From NCBI RefSeq assembly GCF_023055435.1, contig NW_025963815.1, forward strand, positions 558,001-622,000: 64,000 bases of DNA, given 5' to 3'. Of the stretch, positions 48,463-52,362 are shown one piece after another. The stretch's first letter is position 1. Each line of letters opens with the position of its first letter. Both the position numbers and the translations under genes were made by a program. Below the pieces are notes generated by a model. The model saw nothing but the letters and a program-made list of their open reading frames with translations, was not told the DNA's origin and made no database searches. The DNA is from Haliotis rufescens. Its lineage: Eukaryota.

Positions 48463-48529
48463 TGTAATGTTCATAGTCTTTATTCTACTCGTGGCCTACA
48501 GCTTCTCAACTCAATTACCTACACAGCAT

Positions 48530-51500
48530 CACATACTGCACTACAGCTAAATAATAATGCTACATACTAAACTACAGCTAAATAATAGATACTACATACT
48601 ACACTACAGCTAAATAGTAGATACTACATACTACACTACACCAATATAATAATGCTACATACTACACTACAGCTAAATAGTAGATACTAAACACTACACT
48701 ACACCAATGTAATAGATACTACATATTGCACAGCAGCTAAATAATAGATACTACATACTACACTACAGCTAAATAATAGATACTACATACAGCACTACAG
48801 CTAAATAATAGATACTACATACTACACTACACCAATATAATAATGCTACATACAGCACTACAGCTAAATAATAATGCTACATACTAAACTGCAGCTAAAT
48901 AACAGATAATACATTCTACACTACATCTAAATAGTAGATACTACATACTACACTACACCAATATAATAATGATACATACTACATTACAGCTAAATCGTAG
49001 ATACTAAACACTACACTACACCAATGTTATAGATACTTCATATTGCACAGCAGCTAAATAATAGATACTACATACTACACTACAGCTAAATAATAGATAC
49101 TACATACTGCACTACAGCTAAATAATTGATACTACATACTACACACTGCTTAATACTACATACTACACTACTGCTAAATACTACATACTACACTATTGCT
49201 AAATACTACATACTACACTACTGCTAAATAATACATACTACACTACTGCTACATACTACATACTACACTACTGCTAAATACTACATACTACACTACTGCT
49301 AAATACTACATACTATACTACTGCTAAATACTACATACTATACCACTGCTAAATACTACATACTACACTACTACTTCATACTACACTACTGATAAATAGT
49401 ACATACTACAATACTGCTAAATACTACATACTACACTACTGCTAAATACTACATACTATACTACTGCTAAATACTACATACTATACTACTGCTAAATACT
49501 ACATACTACACTACTACTTCATACTACACTACTGATAAATACTACATACTACATTACTGCTAAATACAACATACTACATACTACACTACTGCTAAATACT
49601 ACATACTACACTACTGCTACATACTACACTACTGCTAAAATACTACATACTACACTACAGCTAAATACTACATACTACACTACTGCTAAATACTACATAC
49701 TACACTACTGATACATACTACATACTGCACTACTGCTAAATACTACATACTACACTACTGCTTAATACTACATACTACACTACTGCTAAATACTACATAC
49801 TACGCTATTGCTAAATACTACATACTACACTACTGCTAAATACTACATACTACACTACTGCTACATACTACATACTACACTATTCCTACATACTACACAA
49901 CTGCTAAAATACTACATACTACACTACTGCTAAATACTACATACTACACTACTGCTAAATACTACATACTACACTACTGATAAGTACTACATACTACACT
50001 ACTGCTAAATACTACATACTACACTACTGCTAAATACTACATACTACGCTATTGCTAAATACTACATACTACACTACTGCTAAATACTACATACTACACT
50101 ACTGCTACATACTACATACTACACTACTGCTAAATACTACATACTACACTACTGCTAAATACTACATACTATACTACTGCTAAATACTACATACTACGCT
50201 ACTACTTCATACTACACTACTGCTAAATAGTACATACTACACTACTGCTAAATACTACATACTACACTATTGCTAAATACTACACTACTGCTAAATACTA
50301 CATACTACACTACTGCTAAATACTACATACTATACTACTGCTAAATACTACATACTACGCTACTACTTCATACTACACTACTGCTAAATAGTACATACTA
50401 CACTACTGCTAAATACTACATACTACACTATTGCTAAATACTACACTACTGCTAAATACTACATACTACACTACAGCTAAATACTACATACTACACTACT
50501 GCTACATACTACACTACTGCTAAATACTACATACTACACTACAGCTAAATACTACATACTACACTACTGCTACATACTACACTACTGCTAAATACTAAAT
50601 ACTACACTACAGCTAAATACTACATACTACACCACTGCTACATACTACACTACTGCTAAATACTACATACTACACTACAGCTAAATACTACATACTACAC
50701 TACTGCTAAAAAGTAGATACTAAACAGTACACTACACTAATAAAATAGATACTACATATTGCACTACAGCTAAATAATATATACTACATACTACACTATT
50801 GCTAAATACTACACTACTGCTAAATACTACATACTACACTACTGCTAAATACTACATACTAGACTACTGCTAAATACTGCATTCTACACTATAGCTAGAT
50901 ACTACATACTTCACCACTGCTAAATACTACATACTTCACTTCAGCTAAATAATAATACTACATACTGCACAACAGCTAAATGCTACATACTACACTACTG
51001 ATAAATACTACATACTACACTGCTGCTACATACTACAGTACTGCTAAATACTACATACTACACTACTGCTACATACTACACTACTGCTTATTACTACATA
51101 CTACACTACTGATAAATACTACATACTACACTACTGATAAATACTACACTACAGCTAAATACTACATACTACACTACAGCTAAATAGTAGATACTAAACA
51201 TTACACTAGACCAATATAATAGATACTACATATTGCACTACAGCTAAATAATATATACTACAAACTATACTACTGCTAAATACTACATACTACACTGCTG
51301 CTAAATACTACATACTACACTACTACTACATACTACATACTACACTGCTGCTAAATACTACATACTACACTACTGCTAAATACTACATACTATACTATTG
51401 CTAAATAGTACATACTACACTACTGCTAAATACTACATACTACACTACTGCTAAATACTACATACTACACTACTGCTAAATACTACATACTATACTATTG

Positions 51501-52162
51501 CTAAATAGTACATACTACACTACTGCTGAATACTACATACTACACTTCTGCTAAATAGTACATACTACACTACTGCTGAATACTACATACTACACTTCTG
51601 CTAAATACTACATACTACACAACTGCTAAATACTACATACTGCACTACTACTAAATACTACATACTGCATTACTGCTAAATACTACATAATACACTACTG
51701 CTAAATACTACATACTACATAACTGCTAAATACTACATACCGCATTACTGCTAAATACTACATAATACACTACTGCTAAATACTACATACTACACAACTG
51801 CTAAATACTACATACTGCACTACTGCTAAATACTACATACTACACTACTGCTAAATACTACATACTACACTACTGATACATACTACATACTACACTACTG
51901 CTAAATAGTACATACTACACTACTGATAAATACTACATACTACACTACTGCTAAATACTACATACTACACTACAGCTAAATACTACATACGACACTACTG
52001 CTAAATACTACATACTACACTTCTTCTAAATAATGCTTACTATACTACAGCTAAATACTACATACTACACTACTTCTAAAGACTACATACTACAGTACTT
52101 CTAAATAGTACTTACTACACTTCTTCTAAATAATACTCAGTATACTTCAGTTAAATACTACA
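48530..52162. repeat. ~3.6-kb satellite with 25-bp core (TACTACATACTACACTACTGCTAAA) and 32-bp variants, in the 3' region of ELC copy 3
   Basis: Read directly; both flanks align to the copy 4 3'UTR. Confidence 0.95.
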
Positions 52163-52362
52163 GTGGTTACTATGTACAAGGGCAACGATCTTCCCATTGC
52201 AGGCATCTTCTATGTACAACAGAAAACACGTGTATCTACAGTGGAATTGAACAAGAGTCTGTTTGTTTGTCCAGCTGTCGACCATGTCATTGTAGATCAG
52301 TGCTAAATATGCCAAAGCTTTTGTAACATTGCGTGGTCTTTAATATCTAGAGGACAGACTGT

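Follow-up and report, generated by a model that had tools for sequence, protein, structure and literature searches.

A tandem-repeat minisatellite, likely born in place, in the 3' untranslated region of one copy of an abalone myosin light chain family

Minisatellites, or variable number tandem repeats (VNTRs), are by common usage head-to-tail arrays of 10-100 bp units that extend over about 0.5-30 kb. Arrays of this kind can set one paralogue apart from another: in human segmental duplications, 80 paralogue-specific internal tandem-repeat modifications are listed, 21 of them in untranslated regions (UTRs; 13 exon, 8 intron, according to Table 2 of that study), with a bias to minisatellite expansion (De Grassi and Ciccarelli 2009, Genome Biol 10:R137, PMC2812944, in the part of the text used here). 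The birth of satellites, in turn, has been modeled as a tandem duplication that yields short seed arrays which are then amplified (Camacho et al. 2022, BMC Biol 20:36, PMC8822648), and the sections of that paper that we draw on credit the seed idea to Ruiz-Ruano et al. The “mirage” minisatellites of amphioxus are described, in the excerpt of the source on which we rely (PMC3087553), as tandem duplications spanning exon-intron boundaries. Here, we analyze a window of 64,000 nucleotides from the abalone Haliotis rufescens (RefSeq assembly GCF_023055435.1, contig NW_025963815.1, positions 558,001 to 622,000; G000:C37:558001-622000 in our numbering of the 1.33-Gb genome, which comprises 615 contigs), in which a 3.6-kb tandem array lies in the 3' UTR of one gene, hereafter copy 3, of a myosin essential light chain (ELC) family. 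We consider it likely that the array is a locus-specific minisatellite that was born in place in the distal 3' UTR of copy 3, within a tandem gene family, and that it is a tolerated by-product.

The array is like the human cases in that a unit of tens of bases, arranged head to tail, was expanded in one paralogue inside a transcribed exon or UTR, but it is far larger, with ~140 units and 3.6 kb compared with an average of ~4 units and 160 bp in the part of the human study consulted, and it belongs to a mollusc family in which the UTRs drift but the coding exons remain identical, and in which a fossil UTR, described below, provides an internal outgroup. With the satellite birth model, so far as the cited sections present it, the locus shares duplication, a short array and later amplification, as well as degenerate edges around a homogenized center; unlike satellite families, which occupy many loci or long heterochromatic blocks, the repeat of copy 3 forms one 3.6-kb array. 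Like the mirage minisatellites, it was locally born from genic sequence at an exon end, but the array is internal to the last exon, with UTR on both flanks, and contains neither AATAAA or ATTAAA nor an exon boundary, so that its unit copies no boundary or processing signal. Expansion from proto-repeats and paralogue-specific UTR minisatellites are already known, then, and the copy 3 array is an event of the same kind, only larger, which leaves current views unchanged. The locus nevertheless shows the stages side by side in a single gene family, from less than one unit in the fossil, through about two in copies 4 and 5, to ~140 in copy 3 with both original flanks kept, and offers a ready-made series in which to follow the beginnings and growth of tandem arrays; it also lets one ask if a gene copy is disabled when several kilobases of repeat separate its stop codon from its poly(A) signal. 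The portions of the literature consulted on 3' UTR minisatellites in paralogues, on abalone myosin ELC and on abalone minisatellites describe neither this locus nor UTR arrays in the gene family.

Tandem Repeats Finder (TRF) delimits the array at 48531-52162 (3632 bp), between the proximal 3' UTR of copy 3, a gene on the minus strand, and a retained AATAAA. An earlier note on this DNA had claimed a 3.6-kb repeat array inside this UTR, and the array is real, with both flanks aligning with copies 4 and 5. The 15-nt unit proposed in that note, TACTACATACTACAC, turns out to be just the core of a 25-mer, the true periods being 25 and 32 nt, and “minisatellite” is a better label than the “satellite” used there for what is a single array of 3632 bp with head-to-tail units (25 nt × 122.3, plus the 32-nt units). 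Both domains are assigned to the minus strand. The younger one (49129-52162) consists of 122.3 copies of the 25-nt unit (TRF score 2862, and 3881 at periods 50 and 75), which is ATACTACATACTACACTACTGCTAA on the plus strand and about TTAGCAGTAGTGTAGTATGTAGTAT on the mRNA strand. In the older domain (48531-49144), the unit is 32 nt long and a 317-bp higher-order repeat is present in 1.9 copies with 95% matches; comparison of the two TRF consensus units shows that the 32-mer is the 25-mer plus 7 nt. Identity is 0.57-0.96 at lag 25 in the 25-nt domain and 0.49-0.77 at lag 32 in the 32-nt domain, and the most homogeneous stretches of the array are 49164-49240, 49914-50060 and 51264-51940. An ungapped diagonal scan for block duplications inside the array recovered pairs of 150-bp blocks with 96-100% identity at lags of 161, 68, 856, 143, 244, 317 and up to 2627 bp, the identity at lag 317 in the older domain being 96.7%. 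This pattern is that of repeated multi-unit duplication or unequal exchange, in part very recent; as some of the 150-bp blocks are 100% identical, growth must have lasted until recently, and it is from the lag identities together with the block duplications that the 32-nt domain is taken to be the older and the 25-nt domain the younger. Folding of a 300-nt stretch of the mRNA strand of the array is no better than that of shuffled sequences (z = +0.59), and a structured-RNA reading of the array was rejected on that ground.

In the mRNA orientation, the order in copy 3 is stop codon, ~200 nt of proximal UTR, array, ~55 nt and AATAAA. The proximal UTR (52163-52362, minus strand) matches that of copy 4 at 175 of 195 positions (89.7%) and that of copy 5 at 87.2%, and differs from copies 4 and 5 and the fossil by a 31-nt deletion and a 7-nt insertion in a four-way alignment; the homology to copy 4 runs from 52142 to 52848 against 57951-58685, at 90.8% over 742 columns. 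Distally, a proto-repeat remnant plus spacer (48485-48540, minus strand) is homologous to the copy 4 seed and the stretch before the copy 4 AATAAA: 48451-48540 aligns with 57886-57971 at a local score of 41, a value reached by none of 500 shuffles (mean 17.0, maximum 27), and BLAST, in a small search, matches 41 bp that span the AATAAA at 78% (E = 2e-4). The flank homology put forward in the earlier note has, accordingly, held under formal alignment. The copy 3 AATAAA (48479-48484, minus strand) corresponds by homology to the poly(A) signals in copies 4 and 5 and lies 3879 nt away from the stop codon, in agreement with the displacement of ~3.9 kb that had been claimed; the same is true of the positions given for GTCTTTATTCTAC (48476-48488) and for the copy 4 poly(A) signal (57917-57922, where the plus strand reads TTTATT), and TACTACAGTGGT, placed at ~52157-52168, is present but one base away, at 52156-52167. 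A motif scan of the minus strand between 52339 and 48484 detected no other AATAAA or ATTAAA. An ATTAAA at 52339-52344 (minus strand), which begins 22 nt downstream of where the stop codon begins and is conserved in copies 3, 4 and 5, is a possible early poly(A) signal.

Proto-repeats were scored by aligning three real array units to the paralogues, with 500 shuffles. That of copy 4 (57923-57971, minus strand) lies immediately 5' of the AATAAA at 57917-57922 and amounts to ~1.9 units of the 25-nt repeat (score 47, 0/500 shuffles), and that of copy 5 (63055-63109, plus strand) comprises ~2 units upstream of the AATAAA at 63127-63132 (score 41, 0/500 shuffles). Their structures are unlike, a 7-nt microrepeat in copy 4 versus an interrupted 55-nt form in copy 5. 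By these alignment scores, the seed is to be read as a two-unit version of the 25-nt repeat, more than a GTA-rich patch. Given that copies 4 and 5 hold about two units, copies 3, 4 and 5 separated only after the first duplication. The proposal that the paralogues preserve the states before and after the birth of the array is, therefore, borne out with respect to the short form in copies 4 and 5, except that the state “before” already was a proto-repeat of about two units. Both edges of the copy 3 array grade into halves of the paralogues' proto-repeat, as expected for growth in place.

The polarity of the change is suggested by an older, UTR-only duplicate, the fossil, which lies directly behind the copy 3 poly(A) signal (48185-48462, minus strand) and extends from an equivalent of the stop codon (~48462) via a short seed (48203-48221) to a decayed signal, AAGAGA. 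In a BLAST comparison, its segment 48291-48459 matches positions 4-169 of the copy 4 UTR at 71.5% (E = 2.2e-17), and the genome search found it again; the ends outside this segment are taken from the four-way alignment only. The fossil is 62-64% identical to copies 3, 4 and 5, which are 87-90% identical among themselves, and so is usable as an outgroup; it also retains the 31 nt that are deleted from the proximal UTR of copy 3. Its seed amounts to ~0.7 unit, with a score reached by 1 of 500 shuffles, and being under one unit, favors expansion in copy 3 over contraction in copies 4 and 5. The join between the copy 3 signal and the fossil can be placed within ~8 nt that fit both alignments, which suggests a microhomology join whereby a donor exon 2 with its UTR would have been copied in front of an older UTR. 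Adjoining the fossil is a dispersed repeat, a transposon fragment (47910-48160, strand not assigned), found at no fewer than 39 other genomic places at 68-88%.

The repeat is private to the locus. When a 301-nt piece of the array was used as the query against the genome, with repeat counts that are lower bounds, matches of 69-100% fell only inside the array itself (C37:606-610 kb), and elsewhere, the best matches were 67-78%. Ten of the several dozen weakly matching loci listed were fetched and analyzed with TRF, and proved to be TAC-rich minisatellites of other kinds, whose units differ from that of copy 3 and measure 3 to 31 bp: 25 bp, ACATTATACACTACTGGTACATACA; 27 bp; 13 bp, GACACTACATACT; 31 bp; 24 bp; 7 bp; and (AGT)n types. 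The monomer, in this search, occurs at C37:606-610 kb only, and neither is spread over many loci nor forms very long blocks; on either side of the array, the sequence carries on as paralogous UTR; and the copy 4-type 3' UTR is present in the genome only at copies 3, 4 and 5 and the fossil. A dispersed satellite or transposon origin was rejected on these observations, and the earlier suggestion that the repeat was locally born stands, no other locus that carries it having been found in the 1.33-Gb genome. An allelic or second copy of the array in another ELC cluster, on contig C12, was likewise rejected: the genes there match the window in the coding sequence only, and this UTR family is absent.

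Growth in situ from a short proto-repeat is well supported and can be pictured as follows. Some 20-70 nt upstream of the AATAAA, the ancestor of copies 3, 4 and 5 would have carried two imperfect repeat units of ~25 nt that were rich in GTAGTAT on the mRNA strand. Amplification of this proto-repeat would have been confined to copy 3 and have proceeded presumably by replication slippage in the first steps and later, as the block pattern shows, by unequal exchange of multi-unit blocks, to give the older 32-nt domain near the AATAAA and the younger 25-nt domain near the coding sequence. The outcome is a gene copy in which the poly(A) signal of the family is 3.88 kb from the stop codon, the sole canonical signal in between being the ATTAAA 22 nt after the stop. 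We read the array as a tolerated by-product of the genome's general tendency to make minisatellites, one that is probably neutral or mildly disabling, rather than as an evolved element. Two points lead to this view: no fewer than eight further genes code for an identical or almost identical protein, and a copy 3-type UTR is not detected in RNA in which the family is extremely abundant.

Independent reads bear on the reality and age of the array. Of 24 public runs, four were compared, X3 and X15 (DNA) and X8 and X11 (RNA); their short contigs can neither measure nor confirm the length of the array. In X3, which has the same species label, 27 of 30 bins are covered, and a contig (48339-48567) crosses the distal junction with 0 differences. 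In X15, which has a second species label, one contig spans the distal junction (48234-48556; 9 other letters, 6 gaps) and one the proximal junction (52017-52227; 9 other letters), and two more lie in the interior (48586-48763 and 50084-50154). Both junctions and some of the interior exist, then, in the second-labeled species. As contigs from it cross both edges, the array itself is not new, contrary to the recency of birth that the earlier note had implied.

The RNA evidence is more equivocal. The RNA status of X8 and X11 is a guess, and the contigs carry no strand information; for X11, a contig that leaves exon 2 at the acceptor continues with 26 letters identical to 23077-23102 (26/26), 6.7 kb upstream of copy 1, and on account of this spliced junction, X11 is truly RNA. 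Depth over the coding bins is ~5,000-26,000 in both runs. Contigs leaving the stop codon carry either the copy 4/5-type UTR (loose end 52327) or the copy 2-type UTR (loose end 52360), and at position 52359, the copy 4/5 base, G, accounts for all depth (3740/3740 in X8, 1659/1659 in X11). The copy 3 proximal UTR bin, 52125-52281, has depth 0 in X8 and X11, whereas both DNA runs cover it, although contigs drop rare variants, so that a hole in coverage proves nothing. Farther downstream, 48200-48827 is covered at depth 91-289 in X8 and 97-259 in X11, or ~1% of the depth of the family coding sequence; a 403-nt contig (48198-48600, 0 differences) crosses the AATAAA unbroken; in X11, four contigs between 48198 and 49181 show an even depth of 73-133; and, as far as ~52000, parts of the array are covered at depth 4-134. 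The RNA contigs end at 48178 and 48198, near the edge of the dispersed repeat, and the next AATAAA after the copy 3 signal is at 48004. These data fit either a minor (~1%) copy 3 transcript with a 3' bias that proceeds past the AATAAA, perhaps to the signal at 48004, or an unrelated transcript.

The latter alternative, in which the RNA over 48178-49300 would not be copy 3 mRNA but an independent or read-through transcript, such as one made on the plus strand from the adjacent transposon, or leakage below a very active gene cluster, is a tentative possibility. It would account for the uncoupling of this RNA from the proximal UTR of copy 3, where depth is 0, for the even depth in X11 across the AATAAA and for the neighborhood of the dispersed repeat; yet the contigs give no strand, and the way in which contigs are built may have produced the hole over the proximal UTR.

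The converse possibility, in line with the prediction of the earlier note, is that copy 3 is transcribed through the array and has a functional GUA-rich 3' UTR of ~3.9 kb or more that alters mRNA stability, localization or the choice of poly(A) site. This appears doubtful. The distal array and its flanks are present in both RNA runs at a depth of ~100 with 0 differences, and depth falls from the distal end toward the coding sequence, as it would in a 3'-biased library of a minus-strand transcript; the array is uninterrupted by AATAAA or ATTAAA, and the coding sequence and splice acceptor of copy 3 are intact. The array also presents numerous candidate protein-binding motifs: its mRNA strand contains 268 TGTA (shuffle mean 43, maximum 62; 1 on the opposite strand) and 342 (G/A)T1-3AGT, the DNA form of the Musashi consensus (G/A)U1-3AGU (shuffle mean 37; 12 on the opposite strand). 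Yet, repetition of a single unit multiplies motifs automatically, which by itself explains the excess, and folding shows no stability beyond that of shuffles (z = +0.59). Moreover, the proximal UTR of copy 3 has no RNA depth where the DNA runs cover it, position 52359 is 100% the copy 4/5 base, and the contigs that pass the AATAAA unbroken to 48178-48198 imply that this signal is not an efficient end; they are, again, without strand.

Several considerations weigh against a by-product array born in place in copy 3. Its polarity is a matter of parsimony over four sequences, and arrays can collapse, so that copies 4 and 5 might be contracted remnants. The 32-nt domain is diverged by 23-51% at lag 32, compared with only ~10% between copies 3 and 4, and this high divergence could mean either that the array is older than the split of the paralogues or that decay is faster in arrays. 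Contigs cannot verify the array length, here or in the second species. The RNA of the array could be a real long copy 3 3' UTR with 3' bias, the proximal part of which was clipped in contig building beside very deep branches. The first exon and promoter of copy 3 were not located in searches of the window. Finally, neutrality is something we infer.

Contraction, that is, a long array in the ancestor of copies 3, 4 and 5 that shrank to about two units in copies 4 and 5, is the improbable counterpart of expansion in copy 3. What copies 4 and 5 hold corresponds to the mature 25-mer and not to some unrelated simple repeat, the 32-nt units differ among themselves more than the paralogous UTRs do, and the array predates at least one species split, all of which this history would readily accommodate. 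It calls, however, for two independent collapses, and for a third if the fossil once had an array, whereas the fossil outgroup has under one unit, and clean collapse of one array would not produce the unlike seed structures of copies 4 and 5.

A more elaborate scenario assigns a function to the proto-repeat itself. In the 100 nt before the AATAAA, TGTA occurs 7 times in copy 4 and 5 times each in copies 5 and 3, compared with an expected 0.5-1.0, and none was seen by eye, as opposed to a script count, in the ~95 nt before the AATAAA of copy 1. UGUA upstream of poly(A) sites is an enhancer bound by CFIm, and at -80 to -40 nt raises the use of the distal site, according to the relevant passages of PMC7948361. 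The proto-repeats of copies 4, 5 and 3 resemble these elements in placing a UGUA cluster before the AATAAA, but differ in that UGUA here is known from sequence alone and that the repeat itself may be what enriches it. Conceivably, although we regard this as very improbable, the proto-repeat might be a working upstream poly(A) enhancer: its UGUA cluster, which precedes the AATAAA by 20-70 nt, is kept in copies 3, 4 and 5 and can be made out in the fossil too. The periodicity of the proto-repeat would then have left it liable to runaway growth and seeded a 3.6-kb array that acts as a sink for RNA-binding proteins or, by a shift of the poly(A) site, as a switch that silences copy 3. If true, a functional RNA-processing signal would have seeded an array presenting ~270 UGUA and ~340 Musashi-type motifs on one transcript, which would point to a link between RNA-processing signals and the birth of minisatellites.

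That the array came in as part of some dispersed satellite or transposon, or is an artefact of the assembly, is barely credible and largely refuted, for although it has many weak matches to TAC-rich arrays in the genome and short-read contigs cannot span it, the 10 matches fetched have different units, nothing outside the locus exceeds 78%, both edges grade into the halves of the paralogues' proto-repeat, and the junctions and the majority of bins are covered in three DNA-side observations that come from two studies and carry two species labels.

Membership in the ELC family means an EF-hand protein of ~156 amino acids that can be aligned over its full length to molluscan ELC. The host protein carries EF-hand domains (Pfam EF-hand_7, E = 5.6e-10), and its best match among solved structures is the scallop myosin ELC (1b7t_Z, E = 9.3e-69, residues 1-157 versus 1-156, full length), so that on domain content and full-length alignment, the gene is assigned to the myosin essential light chains. 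In the window, tblastn places copy 1 at 29850-30326 (plus strand; 93% amino-acid identity), copy 2 at 40021-40500 (minus), copy 3 at 52366-52845 (minus), copy 4 at 58203-58682 (minus) and copy 5 at 62336-62815 (plus), the proteins of copies 2, 3, 4 and 5 being 100% identical to one another (for copy 3, over 160 amino acids). Exon 2 of copy 3 (52363-52836, minus strand) contains the whole coding sequence after the start codon, with the stop codon at 52363-52365 and the acceptor tttcag. Three further intact copies are found on contig C12 (365-381 kb), with fragments at other places, for a total of at least eight intact ELC genes in the genome counting the window and C12.

Homology among the ELC copies is limited to exon 2, from ~25 nt before the acceptor to ~35 nt past the AATAAA; between copies 4 and 5, it covers 57881-58705 versus 63166-62311, and copies 1 and 2 have only the coding part in common with the others. 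The coding part of exon 2 is 96-100% identical among copies, and the introns, promoters and in part the UTRs are unalignable. Similarity restricted to exon 2 indicates, on these comparisons, either concerted evolution or strong constraint that would be limited to a single exon. The arrangement of copies 4 and 5 is head to head. At G000:C556:57583555-57584032 lies an ELC copy with in-frame TGA and TAG, the match of which to copy 5 reaches ~30 nt beyond the coding sequence on both sides; it probably is a pseudogene.

Among the first exons, that of copy 1 was located at 23077-23102 through the X11 contig, which gives a first intron of 6.7 kb. On the most abundant ELC contig of X8, ~22 letters upstream of exon 2 (52837), before adapter-like sequence, were not found in the window, and in the genome have one match with 2 mismatches, probably by chance; the first exon of the main expressed ELC copy was, therefore, not located. 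A block conserved between 44601-45103 and 60271-60772 was considered as an exon 1 candidate and rejected: it looked like a transposon fragment with short open reading frames, and had no match upstream of copy 3.

Tandem arrays are abundant around the family, nine large ones detected by TRF making up 18,796 of the 64,000 bases (29.4%) of the window. A 27-bp minisatellite of 34 copies (28878-29784) is inside the first intron of copy 1 and ends 71 nt before the exon 2 acceptor; it seems to have been locally born too, since the sequence that follows it resembles a degenerate unit. A highly uniform 49-bp array (31153-33499; 48 copies, 97% matches) follows a SINE-like fragment ~300 nt beyond the AATAAA of copy 1 (30845-30850). 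Between 2787 and 13031, three abutting arrays (22-bp × 146; 73/146/219-bp; 33-bp × 52) fill 10 kb.

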